Notes: generated by a model from the letters alone, not told the origin. 14,212 bases of DNA from Octopus sinensis (GCF_006345805.1 NW_021825813.1:1-14212); one strand, 5' to 3'; shown: positions 1,317-13,815, counted from the first letter of the stretch. Translations and numbers: made by a program.

Positions 1317-1406
1317 TGATTCCCATTGAGGAAGGCTAAAGAGCCAGAAACGTGCATCTGTTGTTTCCCAATGAGGACTGCTGAAGAGTCAAAAACGCAC
1401 GTCTGT
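1317..1406 (+). repeat. 45-bp tandem duplication; each unit resembles a decayed minimal hammerhead
   Basis: Units 1317-1361 and 1362-1406 align without gaps at 35/45. Unit 1 reads UUCCCA-UUGAGGA-A-GGCU-AAAG-AGCC-A-GAAA-CGUGCA-UC. Confidence 0.6.
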
Positions 1407-1739
1407 GAATACGATAGGGGGAAGCACCGGGCAGATATGGTGTTTTTACACATTCTATCATAAGAGAGAATTTTTTTCTTCACGGTAACTGCACTGAATT
1501 TACCTTTAGAAGTTACTATGTGCCACAAACATATTAACTTAAAGTTCGTTTATTCCTAATACCTGTATGGTGCTCCTACTGGTCTCTCCTCCACACTCTC
1601 TCTCTATATATATATATAGAGGCAATTCGAGGATGTTAGATCCACATTAGGGATTATATAATACCCAAAATTCTACTGCTTAATCACTATCGTATAAGGA
1701 TAAAGTCTCGATGATATGTTAGGGTTTATTGTATTAATA

Positions 1740-9527: not shown

Positions 9528-10068
9528 ATACATAAAATTAAAATTAAAAGATTCAAAAGTCATATTATGTAAAGCCGAAGAAAACCTTATATTAAAAATT
9601 AACTTTAGTTAGAAGGAAAACATGTATAACCAGAGTAAATTAATTAATGATCCTATAAATTTAATTAAAATAAATGCAAGTTTGTTTATGATAAAATATT
9701 CACTTACAGAGATTTAACAGCATAAAAATATAAATACCCGTTAGTCACATACAAACATATACAAACATTCACTTATACATACACACACTAAAAACATATA
9801 CATACACGTATGCACTAAACATACAAACGTTGGCACAGCATACATACATATATACAGACATATACACAAATACATATATTTATATATATATATTATTATA
9901 TATAATATATATATATATATAATATATATATATATTATATATTATATAGAGGGCACTACTACACATAGATGCCACACGCTAGGAGGGACTTTTAAAGTCA
10001 AAACTACCAAACTAAACAAATTGTACCGAATGTAATCTTCGAAGCGAGTCATTTAAAAACAGAATTTA

Positions 10069-10132
10069 GTTACATATCACCTGTGATTTCGCAATCAATG
10101 CAGTATATGCATTTTATGTTCATCAGTGTAAC
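10069..10132 (-). ncRNA. Type-I hammerhead ribozyme, complete core
   Basis: GUUACA-CUGAUGA-ACAUAAAAUGCA-UAUAC-UGCAUUGAUUGC-GAAA-UCAC-AG-GUGA-UA-UGUAAC: perfect 6-bp stem I, stem II with a 6-bp upper helix, near-palindromic stem III, AUA triplet; predicted cut between 10075 and 10074. Confidence 0.85.
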
Positions 10133-10643
10133 GAACTCAAGATAAATATGAATGAACAAACACAACATACCAGACGAGCAACCGTAGTGTCCATCGCAGC
10201 ATATATGAATGTACATCCCTATATATCTATGTAAATGGCGCGCTTTTCGAATTGCATTTCGGTAACAACGTGCTTACTCGGAACAAAAATTCTGTAATGA
10301 ACTGTTCCGGTGAAAAATATAAATTTAAAAATAGGATAAAATCTTCATAAGAAATTATCAAGTAGTTAGTGTGAAAAAACCTCGTAAGAGAAAAAATTCG
10401 CAAATTTTTTCCACTTAAAATATTTATTTATATGAAGATTTTATCCTATTTTTAAATTTATATTTTTCACCGAACAGTTCAATACTGAATTTTTGTTCCG
10501 AGTAAGCACGTTGTTACCGAAATGCATTCGAAAAGCGCGCCATTTACATAATATATAGGATGTACATTCATATATGCTGGCGATGGACACTACGTTGCTC
10601 GTCTGGTATGTTGTGGTTGTTCATTCATATTTATCTTGAGTTC

Positions 10644-10708
10644 GTTACACTGATGAACATAAAATGCATATACTGCATTGATTGGCAAAATCACAGGTGA
10701 TATGTAAC
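10644..10708 (+). ncRNA. Mutated second copy of the element A hammerhead
   Basis: Same sequence except UUGC-GAAA reads UUGGC-AAAA, removing catalytic G12. Confidence 0.75.
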
Positions 10709-10943
10709 TAAATTCTGTTTTTAATGACTCGCTTCGAAGATTGCATTCGGTACAATTTGTTTATTTTGGTAGTTTTGACTTTAAAAGTCCCTCCTAGCGT
10801 GTGGTATCTATGTGTAATAGTGCCCTTTATATAATATAAATAAATATTTAAGAGTGGAAAAAAATTTGCGAATTTTTCTCTTACGAAGTTTTTTTCACGC
10901 TAACTACTTGATAATTTCTTATGAAGATTTTATCCTATTTTTA

Positions 10944-10985
<42 letters not shown>

Positions 10986-10989
<4 letters not shown>

Positions 10990-11126
10990 GACGGGATTCT
11001 TTCAGTTACCAAATCCATTCACAAGGCTTAGGCGACCCGAGACTATAGTAGAAGACACTTGCCCAAAGTGTCCGCCAGTGGGACTGAACCCGGAACCATG
11101 GTTTTGGTAAGCAAGCTACGTACCAC
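10986..11126 (-). mobile_element. Family-3 SINE head, 5' end clipped
   Basis: Minus strand GTGGTACGTAGCTTGCTTACC..CATGGTTCCGGGTTCAGTCCCACTG..TTTGGGCAAGTGTCTTCTACTATAG; homologous to 5657-5825. Confidence 0.85.
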
Positions 11127-11441
11127 TTAAAACATACATATATAATAGTAACACACATTTATACATGCATACAAATATACAATATACAAATAAACAATAC
11201 GCATATATAATAATATATATTACATATATAATATGTATAAGCATAAACGTACGTATATACATGATATCGTGTATACGCATACAAATATACTTATGTATTA
11301 AACAGTATTTTCCTTTGATGTATTGAATATTAAAAATGAGAAAATAGCGCAATAAATTAATGTGATATAATTTAGTGTAGCATAAATATGAAAATATAAA
11401 TTTAAAATATAAATTTGAAAATGAGTAAAATTTTTTTTAAT

Positions 11442-11535
11442 TTGACCTCGGCGAAATTTAAATCGGAAATTTAGCAACTGGCTAAATATCGCCAAATATT
11501 TTGCTCAGCTCGCTAAAGCTCTGCAACATCACCTT
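11442..11535 (-). mobile_element. Highly decayed family-1 SINE head fragment
   Basis: TTGACCTCGGCGAAATTT is identical to 2208-2225; weaker similarity beyond that. Confidence 0.55.
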
Positions 11536-11967
11536 ACCAGCAATGATAATAATAATGATAAATAAATGCAATGAAAGTAATTAATTAAATAATAAAAATC
11601 ATAAAAATTATAACAAAAAATAAAATAAAATAAATCCATTCGGGTATCTGATATCTTAAGGCAATTTTAGGCAATTGTAGATACACGATATCTTTGAAGC
11701 ACATTTTGGACAGTTGTAAATGGACTTTTAAAGATATGCATTATAAATCAAAGTTGTGAGGTATATTTTGGATTAAATTGCAGTGTAAAAAACAATATCA
11801 TGGCTCAAAAAAGGTGCATTGAGAAGTAGTAGTTATAATAAAACAGTGAAAATAAAATAAAAATAGAAAATAAAATAATAGTTTGTAAATAATCGGTTTT
11901 CTTGAAAGTTATAAAATATAGATGTAAAATGTAAAGACGAAAAATATATATCCAATGGATGTATATA

Positions 11968-12138
11968 TTTTTTTTACTTGTTTCAGTCATTTGACAGCAG
12001 CCATGCTAGAGCACCGCCTTTAGTCGAGCAAATCGATCCAGGAATTATTCTTTGTAACCCTAGTACTTATTCTATCGGTCTCTTTTGCCGAACCGCTAAG
12101 TTACGGTGACGTAAATACAACAGCATCGGTTGTCAAGC
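11968..12138 (-). mobile_element. SINE 3' half (5'-truncated), fused to the mariner relic
   Basis: Minus strand GCTTGACAACCGATGCTG..TAACTTAGCGGTTCGGCAAAAGAGACCGATAGAATAAGTACTAG..GATTTGCTCGACTAAAGGCGGTGCTCTAGCATGGC..GACTGAAACAAGTAAAA with an A-rich end. Confidence 0.8.
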
Positions 12139-12158
12139 ATGTGATCGTTGCATTGACC

Positions 12159-12584
12159 ATGACAGAGAAAATTGCCATGGCGATACCTGCTCAGAGGCCT
12201 ACACAATGTTGCAGAAAGTGTATGGAGAGGAATAAATGAGCCTCGCACAAGTGTACGAGTGGCTGAGACGTTTCCAAGATGGCCGAAACAATGTCGATAT
12301 TGGCGATCGTTGTGGGAGATCCGCAACAAGCAGGACTAAGAAAAGCATCGCAGATGTACCTGCAGCTATGAGGGGAAATCGTCGAATCACCATCCGTGAG
12401 TTATCAGAGGATGTGCAGATTAGTTACGGTTCAGTTCAGCCCATTATCACTGAAGATTTGGATATGAGACGTGTGTCTACCTAGTTTGTGCCAAAATTAG
12501 TTTCAGCTGACCAAATGGGCACTAGGGTTTCAGTTTCACATGATCTCTTTGATTGTGTCAAGAACAATGAAAACTTTTTGGAAA
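12159..12584 (+). pseudogene. Tc1/mariner transposase N-terminal (HTH DNA-binding) relic
   Basis: The frame reads GDTCSEAYTMLQKVYGEE*MSLAQVYEWLRRFQDGRNNVDIGDRCGRSATS..RRITIRELSEDVQISYGSVQPIITEDLDMRRVST*FVPKLVSADQMGTRVSVSHDLFDCVKNNENFL. This matches mariner motifs (xGRP, RRxTxRE, WVP-equivalent FVPK linker). It has two stops and a frameshift and ends before the catalytic DETW motif. Confidence 0.93.
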
Positions 12585-12587
12585 TTC

Positions 12588-12740
12588 TGCGTAGGCCTCT
12601 GAGCAGGTATCGCCAAGGTTTTCTGCGCAACTCTTTGTCATAGTCAATGCGACGATCACACGCTACACACTTGCTTCGAAGCACTTCTGTAACCAGTGGG
12701 AGTGAGCTAGAACGTTAAAACTTAGTGCGCATGCACTAAA
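12588..12740 (-). mobile_element. Inverted duplicate of the mariner 5' UTR and first codons
   Basis: Its reverse complement AGCGTGTGATCGTCGCATTGACTATGAC..TGGCGATACCTGCTCAGAGGCCTAC matches 12136-12202; it ends in the hairpin TTAGTGC-GCAT-GCACTAA (12722-12739). Confidence 0.88.
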
Positions 12741-12773
12741 AACATATATACACACATATATATATACATACAT

Positions 12774-12815
<42 letters not shown>

Positions 12816-12829
12816 TATATATATATTAT

Positions 12830-12863
<34 letters not shown>

Positions 12864-13534
12864 CTACTAATATAGATGAAGTTCTTTACAGAAAAAAATC
12901 CATCAAAAAATGTGGCAGCATATTAAAATACCTTTAAATTATAAACAACTTATAATAAGGGCTAAAGAAAATTATTTCAATACCAATATGCTGATAACAG
13001 GCTTTTAAATCGTCAATTTCCACATATTATTTACTCGCTACAGAAAAAAACACGACGTGCAGAAATCGGGGAAAGCCGGCCGATAGAATTTTTTTTAAAG
13101 TTCGTTATTTCTATAGTGAATCAATTTCAGAATTAATCTCATAATAGATTTTTTTTCCTCTTCAGTAGAACATACGAAAGGATATAAATAAGATACTTAC
13201 ATGCGCCCATGGAAAAAAACCGAAGCAAAAATCATGAGTACATATAAGTACCCCAGATATATCTAAAAATATATCTAAAACGTGTTGACTGTTCTCCACT
13301 ACAGGTTATAGTGGTTACCAGTCCCTATAGCGAGTAGTAATAAGTCTTCTACTAATATAGGATGACGTTCTTTTACAGAAAAAAATTCCTTCAGAAAATG
13401 TGGCAGCATATTAAAATACCTTTACGGTTAAAATTATAAACAACTTATAAATAAGGGCTAAAGAAAATTATTTCAATGCCAATATGCTGATAACAGACTT
13501 TTAAATCGTCAATTTCCACAAATTATTTACTCGC

Positions 13535-13538
<4 letters not shown>
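12864..13538 (-). mobile_element. Retrozyme-like element B: ~1.4 tandem copies of a 485-bp hammerhead-containing unit, embedded in (TA)n
   Basis: Direct repeat 12864-13042 / 13349-13538 (6 substitutions, four 1-bp indels, one 7-bp indel), period 485, (TA)n on both flanks, HHR in the unique middle segment. Confidence 0.83.
13109..13170 (-). ncRNA. Type-I hammerhead ribozyme, complete core
   Basis: UUCUA-CUGAAGA-GGAAAAAAAAUCU-AUUAUG-AGAUUAAUUCU-GAAA-UUG-AUU-CAC-UA-UAGAA: 5-bp stem I, stem II with an internal loop and AAUCU/AGAUU helix, stem III with one U.C mismatch, CUA triplet; predicted cut between 13114 and 13113. Confidence 0.75.
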
Positions 13539-13568
<30 letters not shown>

Positions 13569-13622
13569 CATACGCACACATATACGGTCCTATAACGTCA
13601 CACGCAGGGAACACAAGATATA

Positions 13623-13656
<34 letters not shown>

Positions 13657-13815
13657 CATACATACATACACACACATATATACACACATACATATGTATA
13701 TATACATATATATATATCTATATATATACATATATATATACGCACACACACACAAATATACATACATATATATATATATATATATTATATATACACGTAC
13801 ACACATATGTATGTA
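13539..13815. repeat. (TA)n/(TACA)n/(CA)n compound microsatellite
   Basis: Direct reading. Confidence 0.93.

Follow-up and report, generated by a model that had tools for sequence, protein, structure and literature searches.

Two short repeats lying between (TA)n microsatellites in a scaffold of Octopus sinensis (NW_021825813.1; the whole 14,212-nt stretch analysed is called the window here) raise the question of what kind of element they are and how they reached these sites. A preliminary description of the window had proposed that both are copies of small circular RNAs carrying hammerhead ribozymes, reverse-transcribed and integrated by a Penelope-like element (PLE). Animal retrozymes are thought to spread via small circular RNAs copied by Penelope-like reverse transcriptases, while co-occurrence and homology to pseudo-long terminal repeats (pLTRs) have until now been the main grounds for inferring how they integrate. 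Our analysis indicates that both elements are likely to be dead, dispersed copies of two unrelated non-autonomous and non-coding families of the animal non-long-terminal-repeat (non-LTR) retrozyme type. The coordinates are collected in Table 1.

The two units have no recognisable similarity, as a BLASTN comparison returned chance matches only (8-16 nt long; the best one, of 14 nt, has E = 0.099). Both have a GC content of 32%, neither element contains an open reading frame (ORF) of at least 50 amino acids (AA) starting with ATG, and Tandem Repeats Finder (TRF) places TA tracts at all four sides. In similarity, coding content and flanks the preliminary description holds. Its unit lengths of 489 and 485 bp are correct for family 1, with a window unit of 489 nt and a consensus of 488 nt, and need correction for family 2, where the window unit has 486 nt and the consensus 510 nt because the window copy carries a deletion of about 24 nt. 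Permuted or more-than-unit copies had also been described; element 2 with its partial tandem agrees with this, whereas element 1 is composed of two convergent arms. Its left arm, for which the RNA sense is the minus strand, begins at the main fixed start of family 1 (GAGGGC...). The right arm starts at the second fixed start (q369), adjoining the right-hand (TA)n. The two arms are 96% identical and overlap by 7 nt at their junction. Element 2 begins at the fixed start of family 2, CTACTAATATAG, and its distal end, which lies at no fixed unit position, is joined to (TA)n.

Table 1. Features of the two elements and of related loci. Positions are counted over the whole window (O. sinensis NW_021825813.1) unless a locus (L) is named; unit positions (q) are counted along the plus strand of the query units. 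Arrows mark predicted cuts; CM, covariance model.
Feature	Position	Strand	Description
(TA)n-rich microsatellite, left target of element 1	9840-9948	.	TRF period 2, sequence
Element 1, whole	9949-10953		two convergent arms
Element 1, left arm	9949-10437	+	family-1 q1-489, cDNA sense, 489 nt
Family-1 type-I hammerhead (predicted), 64 nt	10069-10132	-	GUUACA-CUGAUGA-[helix II, 29 nt]-GAA-AUCACAGGUGAU-A↓UGUAAC; family-2-only CM 34.5 bits, E = 1.7e-5
Element 1, right arm	10431-10953	-	q369-485 then q2-401, cDNA sense, 523 nt
Second family-1 hammerhead copy (predicted), in right arm	about 10644-10708	+	family-2-only CM 24.9 bits
(TA)22 right of element 1	10945-10988	.	TRF
(TA)n left of element 2	12744-12863	.	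TRF
Element 2	12864-13538	+	family-2 q1-486 then q1-179 (1.38 tandem units), cDNA sense
Family-2 type-I hammerhead (predicted), 62 nt	13109-13170	-	(G)UUCUA-CUGAAGA-[helix II, about 28 nt]-GAA-AUUGAUUCACU-A↓UAGAA; CM 78 bits
(TA)14 right of element 2	13538-13565	.	TRF
Third hammerhead family, 535-nt unit	L063:6492-7596		two convergent arms, 99% identical; (TA)n both sides
Apparently intact PLE family	L064:1053-5896; copies L063, L065, L066, L070-L072		781-AA ORF and upstream 479-AA ORF
At least two smaller hammerhead-bearing elements	L069 (reverse complement) about 284-510, 1000-1226, 1330-1580		adjoining (TA)n, upstream of PLE

A pattern search found CTGANGA...GAAA on the minus strand of both elements. 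The descriptor used required the core, at least four contiguous pairs in helix I, at least three in helix II, the A15.1-U16.1 pair and an H17 other than G. In its strict form it recovered the family-2 ribozyme, with an expectation of 0.007 matches per shuffled 14-kb window, and when the first helix-II pair was allowed to mismatch it added the family-1 ribozyme, with an expectation of 0.023 per shuffled window. Both predicted ribozymes are of type I, with an open helix I, have a long helix II with an internal loop and a 4-bp helix III, and are predicted to cleave after U16.1-A17, between 10075 and 10074 in family 1 and between 13115 and 13114 in family 2. Descriptor and consensus both agree with the earlier claim of a single 62-64-nt type-I hammerhead per unit with a predicted UA cut.

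The consensus ribozymes, derived from 60 genomic loci, are cleaner hammerheads than the window copies and read GUUGCA-CUGAAGA-GCA/UAG/AAUGCA-UAUUC-UGCAUU/GAU/UGC-GAA-AUCA-CAGG-UGAU-A↓UGUAAC in family 1 (64 nt) and UUUCUA-CUGAAGA-GGAA/AG/AAUCU-UUUAUG-AGAUU/AA/UUCC-GAA-AUUG-AUU-CAAU-A↓UAGAAA in family 2 (62 nt). Both are canonical, with a G10.1-C11.1 pair and a 4-bp helix III, and the defects sit in single copies. The first family-1 ribozyme of the window has an A at position 10.1, and the second has changed from GCGAAA to GGCAAAA, with loss of the catalytic G12, and is presumably dead. The family-2 copy of the window has a G.U at 10.1/11.1 and a damaged helix III, its 15.2-16.2 pair being broken. 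The core (C3-U4-G5-A6-N7-G8-A9, G12-A13-A14, A15.1-U16.1 and H17) is found in both consensuses and in the majority of copies. All four bases occur at N7, and A, C or U at H17, except for a G in one family-2 copy.

The strongest single test for the predicted hammerhead is its detection across families. A CM built from family-2 sequences alone recovered every family-1 ribozyme searched, at the expected place and on the expected strand (23-41 bits, E = 4e-7 to 9e-3), and gave 20 bits (E = 0.06) on the third family. On the named structure, 96% and 93% of the cells were paired in the two families, and sliding the partners reduced this to 16-55%. Three pairs are changed on both sides in family 1, a number reached by 11 of 500 shuffles, and six in family 2, reached by none of 500. 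A diverged family-2 relative (L064, 492-557) is 67% identical and has helices II and III rebuilt with G-C pairs. The fold is thus kept, as the preliminary description had anticipated, through compensatory changes across sub-families, and it is common to unrelated families. Homodimers are predicted to form a double hammerhead with an extended helix III, a mode that is known for PLE hammerheads. It is known for newt hammerheads as well (PMC7229834). The circular minimum free energy (MFE) of the consensus units, compared with dinucleotide shuffles, has z-scores of -5.0 and -7.4 on the hammerhead strand and weaker ones of -1.9 and -5.1 on the opposite strand; the stability on the hammerhead strand fits the published retrozyme RNAs, which are highly self-paired (PMC7229834). 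As far as sequence comparison can tell, there is little doubt that the hammerhead motif is genuine.

Both families are multi-copy and dispersed, as had been expected. Whole-genome searches gave 1861 first-look candidates for family 2 and 3143 for family 1, and ribozyme halves (28-30 nt, at most one mismatch) gave at least 304 and at least 609 matches for the two families, with none in a reversed control. These near-exact halves are spread over the chromosomes. In most loci there is just one ribozyme, and the sampled loci showed no long arrays; pairs of ribozymes on the same strand, separated by one unit, occur at a spacing of 489-519 nt.

The decomposition of 39 arms of family 2 and 43 arms of family 1 revealed a polar insertion footprint. 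Family-2 arms start at q1-2 in 23 of the 39 cases and at q77-82 in 13, and family-1 arms at q1 in 22 of the 43 cases and at q369-371 in 13. Three of these four preferred starts lie directly after a TA-rich tract of the unit. Upstream of the arm start, the adjacent 20 nt are TA-rich in 29/39 and 33/43 arms, respectively, in contrast to only 4/39 and 4/43 for the sequence beyond the distal end. Distal ends are scattered over the whole unit, with arm lengths of 36-1327 nt (0.1-2.7 units), and no pile-up of insert ends was found among the decomposed arms at the predicted cleavage sites (about q126/127 in family 1 and q251/252 in family 2). In the loci, opposite-strand neighbours are convergent at 13 of 14 junctions in family 1 and at all nine in family 2. 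The gaps between such arms range from -7 to +49 nt, many of them being overlaps of 0-7 nt. Unbiased genome-wide pattern listings showed the matching orientation in 10/10 neighbouring ribozyme pairs. The median identity within an insert (0.958 and 0.938 in the two families) exceeds that between inserts (0.892 and 0.916).

Since twin arms, together with a start that is fixed at a nicked (TA)n and a 5' end that varies, form the footprint of target-primed reverse transcription, a spread of these families by this process at (TA)n is very likely. For each of families 1, 2 and 3, the RNA strand implied by the polarity of insertion coincides with the strand that bears the hammerhead. As a separate observation, (CTA)n/(TAG)n runs of 4-12 repeats often lie between (TA)n and the family-2 start CTACTA..., as in the loci L007, L013, L018 and L024, which points to slippage when the cDNA is initiated or to a template whose 3' tail varies.

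PLEs with a reverse transcriptase, a GIY-YIG domain and the same (TA)n junctions, which the preliminary description had expected to co-occur, are indeed present in the genome. A GIY-YIG search yielded 4846 candidates. Open frames of 600-880 AA are frequent among them, and many of these frames have 781 AA. Ten PLE loci covering two or three PLE families were fetched, and their 775-781-AA ORFs encode RVT_1 together with a GIY-YIG domain at the C-terminus. The main family has copies that are 98-99% alike, every one of which ends in ...ACAAATATATA(TA)n, the terminal sequence before (TA)n reading ...TTTTTTACAAATATATA. Several are 5'-truncated, with an inverted fragment at the truncation in L072, and the 3' untranslated region (UTR) contains tandem repeats of about 92 nt with TGACGTC motifs. 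These (TA)n-targeting PLEs, with their retrozyme-like footprint, look recently active. A bias towards (TA)n and complex tandem or inverted insertions have been reported for PLEs (PMC8557442), and recently active Penelope families for Octopus vulgaris (PMC13282606). Because the PLEs of this genome leave the same footprint at (TA)n, they are the likely source of the enzymes, and we lean towards this assignment.

The L064 copy of the PLE sits within a 5.9-kb local tandem duplication and is flanked on both sides by family-2-like sequence. A shared pLTR was considered for this sequence and rejected, as the other PLE copies lack it; it is an old insert in flanking DNA within the duplication and was kept as the diverged homologue for the covariation analysis.

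Several results weigh against the interpretation of the two elements as retrozymes mobilised by PLEs, and those concerning the ribozyme also speak for the possibility that the motifs are chance or decayed sequences without a catalytic role in otherwise ordinary short non-autonomous retroelements. The check with Rfam hammerhead models that the preliminary description had proposed was negative: cmscan of the window, 16 loci and two 181-nt slices with consensus-like copies gave no hammerhead match, for the window and the slices even at E <= 10. The helices are AU-rich and weak. When the isolated 62-64-nt RNAs were folded by MFE, helix II was recovered but neither the canonical helices I and III nor the junction; the canonical fold lies above the MFE by 1.2 kcal/mol in family 1 and 5.3 kcal/mol in family 2. 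All six compensatory pairs of family 2 stem from one diverged copy, so the support from covariation is modest. No clear excess of conservation was seen in the ribozyme region over the rest of the unit among copies, as is to be expected of copies in neutral decay. Furthermore, a younger family-1 sub-family that includes the window copy has spread without G10.1. In this sub-family, the one closest to the window copy (L032-L046, 92-95% identity), G10.1 is replaced by A, which leaves an A.C mismatch, and an A-U pair is restored in two copies; the sub-family either multiplied although its ribozyme was weakened or has no need of the 10.1-11.1 pair. That the motifs are chance or decayed sequences is nevertheless improbable, since the complete motif is found on the predicted RNA strand in at least three unrelated families in about 290 kb, the shuffle expectation is 0.007-0.023 per 14 kb, the CM detects the motif across families, and the compensatory changes are accompanied by N7 and H17 residues that, apart from the single G mentioned above, remain within the allowed sets.

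The remaining adverse results concern the mode of mobilisation. BLASTN of both units against the ten PLE loci found no match in a PLE body or terminus, the single unit match being the old family-2-like copy in the flanking DNA of L064, and the UTRs of L064, the PLE copy examined in detail, contain no canonical hammerhead. The start points are fixed, at two TA-rich unit positions per family, and not freely permuted. Without a sequence link to PLEs, the same retroelements could have been mobilised in the manner of short interspersed nuclear elements (SINEs) by a long interspersed nuclear element (LINE) with a (TA)n-type tail. LINE insertions likewise have a fixed 3' end, 5' truncation and twin-priming inversions as their hallmarks, and a tRNA-SINE-like fragment adjoins (TA)n both in the window (10989-11130) and in L069. 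However, partial tandems of more than one unit combined with frequent convergent inverted arms at microsatellites are a published signature of PLEs (PMC8557442) that the fetched PLE copies show at (TA)n, and hammerheads are associated with PLEs and not with LINEs (PMC7229834), which makes mobilisation by a LINE unlikely. Far less probable still is a DNA-level repeat, be it a Helitron-like or foldback/miniature inverted-repeat (MITE) transposon inserted at AT dinucleotides or a satellite spread by recombination. For a Helitron (TA)n would be an ideal target, and element 1 resembles a foldback element with long inverted arms. Each arm, however, has one fixed end, while the inner or distal ends scatter over the unit; within one insert the arms start from different unit positions and are therefore not true terminal inverted repeats (TIRs); nearly all inverted pairs are convergent in one sense; and the ends do not match the Helitron termini 5'-TC...CTRR-3'. 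The inserts occur on all chromosomes as 0.1-2.7 units and not as long arrays. TIRs, target-site duplications (TSDs) and two fixed ends were found in neither family, in line with the expectation of the preliminary description, and the Helitron, foldback and satellite readings were rejected on the end structure.

The proposed retrozyme cycle would begin at a source locus in which two or more hammerheads have the same sense and whose transcription proceeds from the window's minus strand. The type-I hammerheads, probably aided by dimer pairing via the short helix III, would release a highly self-paired RNA of unit length, which might then be closed to a circle by ligation. A (TA)n microsatellite would be nicked and its 3' end would prime reverse transcription at one of the two preferred unit positions, and the resulting cDNA of 0.1 to about 2.7 units would read through the ribozyme cleavage site and have no fixed stop. 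In many events the other strand of the break would prime a second cDNA, so that the arms converge and join at overlaps of 0-7 nt. Reverse transcriptase and endonuclease would be supplied in trans, most likely by a PLE.

As to the template, the pile-up of insert ends at the cleavage site that run-off on cleaved linear monomers would leave was not seen among the decomposed arms. Inserts of more than one unit that read through this site fit a circle and an uncleaved multimeric RNA equally well, and since the starts are fixed and show no free permutation, the inserts do not call for a circle. We see the chances of a circular and of a multimeric linear template as even. Of the proposal that circle copies were reverse-transcribed into (TA)n by a PLE, the insertion footprint supports the reverse transcription at (TA)n, while free permutation of the starts and a sequence link to PLEs were not observed. 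A more specific model, put forward here tentatively, is that a PLE makes a staggered break in (TA)n, whose two 3' ends anneal to internal UA-rich tracts of a circular RNA, a template without a 3' end of its own; rolling-circle extension past the ribozyme site and joining of the converging cDNAs by microhomology would follow. If this were true, the inserts would be the first clear genomic footprint of animal retrozyme integration, octopus genomes would hold many such families supplying abundant small circular RNAs, and at least one family would still be active, as represented by the two-arm insert with 99% identity in L063.

Judged by their structure, the octopus families fall under the definition of metazoan non-LTR retrozymes, with a unit slightly above the published range. 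These retrozymes are known from coral, mussel, axolotl, newt satellite 2 and Schistosoma Sm-alpha (Cervera & de la Pena 2020, NAR, PMC7229834). Common to both are a short, non-coding, AT-rich unit with one type-I hammerhead, the occurrence of head-to-tail copies, a highly self-paired unit RNA, coexisting PLEs, and the lack of an LTR, a primer-binding site (PBS) and a polypurine tract (PPT). In contrast, the octopus units are 488-535 nt long instead of 150-450 nt, the copies are mostly single inserts of less than two units and not long tandem arrays, and an internal loop interrupts a long helix II of 28-52 nt. The convergent arms and strict (TA)n junctions are a further difference, as the main text of PMC7229834 is without microsatellite targets. 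Circular RNA was demonstrated for the published retrozymes (PMC7229834), whereas the octopus families are known from genomic sequence alone.

With PLEs that carry an endonuclease, namely Penelope/Poseidon, Neptune and Naiad (Craig et al. 2021, PMC8557442), and with pLTR-derived retrozymes, the octopus families have in common the (TA)n bias, partial tandem or inverted 5'-truncated structures and type-I hammerheads with a short helix III. They differ from PLEs in encoding nothing and in having no detectable sequence in common with the fetched PLE loci. Animal retrozymes have been proposed to be PLE derivatives (Li, Clavereau & Pollet 2026, bioRxiv 10.64898/2026.07.22.740005), and the retrozymes of that Xenopus study are homologous to PLE pLTRs, a homology not encountered in octopus in the comparison with PLEs of two or three families. 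The LTR retrozymes of plants (Cervera et al. 2016, PMC4918200) are likewise non-autonomous retroelements with hammerheads that release a circularisable RNA, but their type III hammerheads in LTRs, PBS, PPT, 4-bp TSDs, high GC content and Gypsy-type mobilisation have no counterpart in the octopus families. The convergent arms also bear a likeness to another class of insertion. In the 5' inversions of LINE-1, twin priming produces two cDNAs from both strands of one staggered break, which are joined by microhomology. The octopus arms are likewise convergent cDNAs joined at microhomology; the difference is that the octopus primers would start at preferred internal TA-rich sites of a repetitive or circular template, so that either arm may be longer than one unit.

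Earlier publications already cover the non-LTR retrozymes of animals and their connection to PLEs (PMC7229834; PMC8557442; bioRxiv 10.64898/2026.07.22.740005), and the new part of this work is their occurrence in cephalopods. No cephalopod case was found in PMC7229834 or its supplement, and no description of such elements in cephalopods in the literature searched. The octopus families extend the retrozyme phenomenon to a group whose repeat annotations leave many families unclassified. They also provide a legible footprint, consisting of fixed TA-rich initiation, read-through of the cleavage site and convergent arms at (TA)n, that ties retrozymes to target-primed reverse transcription of the PLE type. 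Since annotation based on Rfam misses these ribozymes entirely, hammerhead counts in cephalopods are likely large underestimates; for the giant squid genome, no more than 235 hammerhead matches to Rfam are listed (PMC6962438).

The two families of the window are not the only ones. The third family and the small elements of L069 were found in about 80 kb fetched around PLEs, and at least four to five hammerhead families were seen in about 290 kb. The predicted hammerhead of the third family has 84 nt with a helix II of 52 nt, and the near-identical arms suggest that the L063 insert is very recent. Among the small elements of L069, one has an 83-nt and one a 45-nt predicted ribozyme. Over the whole genome, the Rfam model RF00163 detects other hammerheads, mostly of 42-48 nt, which do not belong to families 1 or 2. 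Hammerhead_1 matches at G000:C16:25146363-25146839, C13:23787518-23788082 and C10:79962797-80038904 form pairs on the same strand at a distance of 431 nt, inverted pairs with a spacing of about 520 nt, and local clusters, which hints at more retrozyme-like families with short (42-48-nt) hammerheads. The Rfam output as a whole was dominated by spurious miRNA matches in (TA)n and (TACA)n, and the dozens of sub-threshold matches to mir-297, mir-3149, mir-5014 and others (window 13524-13700 and microsatellites of the loci) were rejected as low-complexity artefacts.

Further repeats lie near the two elements. The SINE-like fragment at 10989-11130 (minus strand) has a B-box-like GGTTCCGGGTTCAGTCC and directly adjoins (TA)n, as does the same SINE in L069; ARAGORN called no tRNA in this fragment. 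Other retroelements of this genome seem to use (TA)n as well. A copy of a SINE-like repeat at 11975-12130 is also found in the flanks of L040 and L069. It is followed at 12131-12669 by a MITE-like element with inverted termini of about 75 nt (12131-12205 and 12588-12669) around an 82-AA ORF remnant that has weak helix-turn-helix matches; the element is probably a mariner-type deletion derivative.

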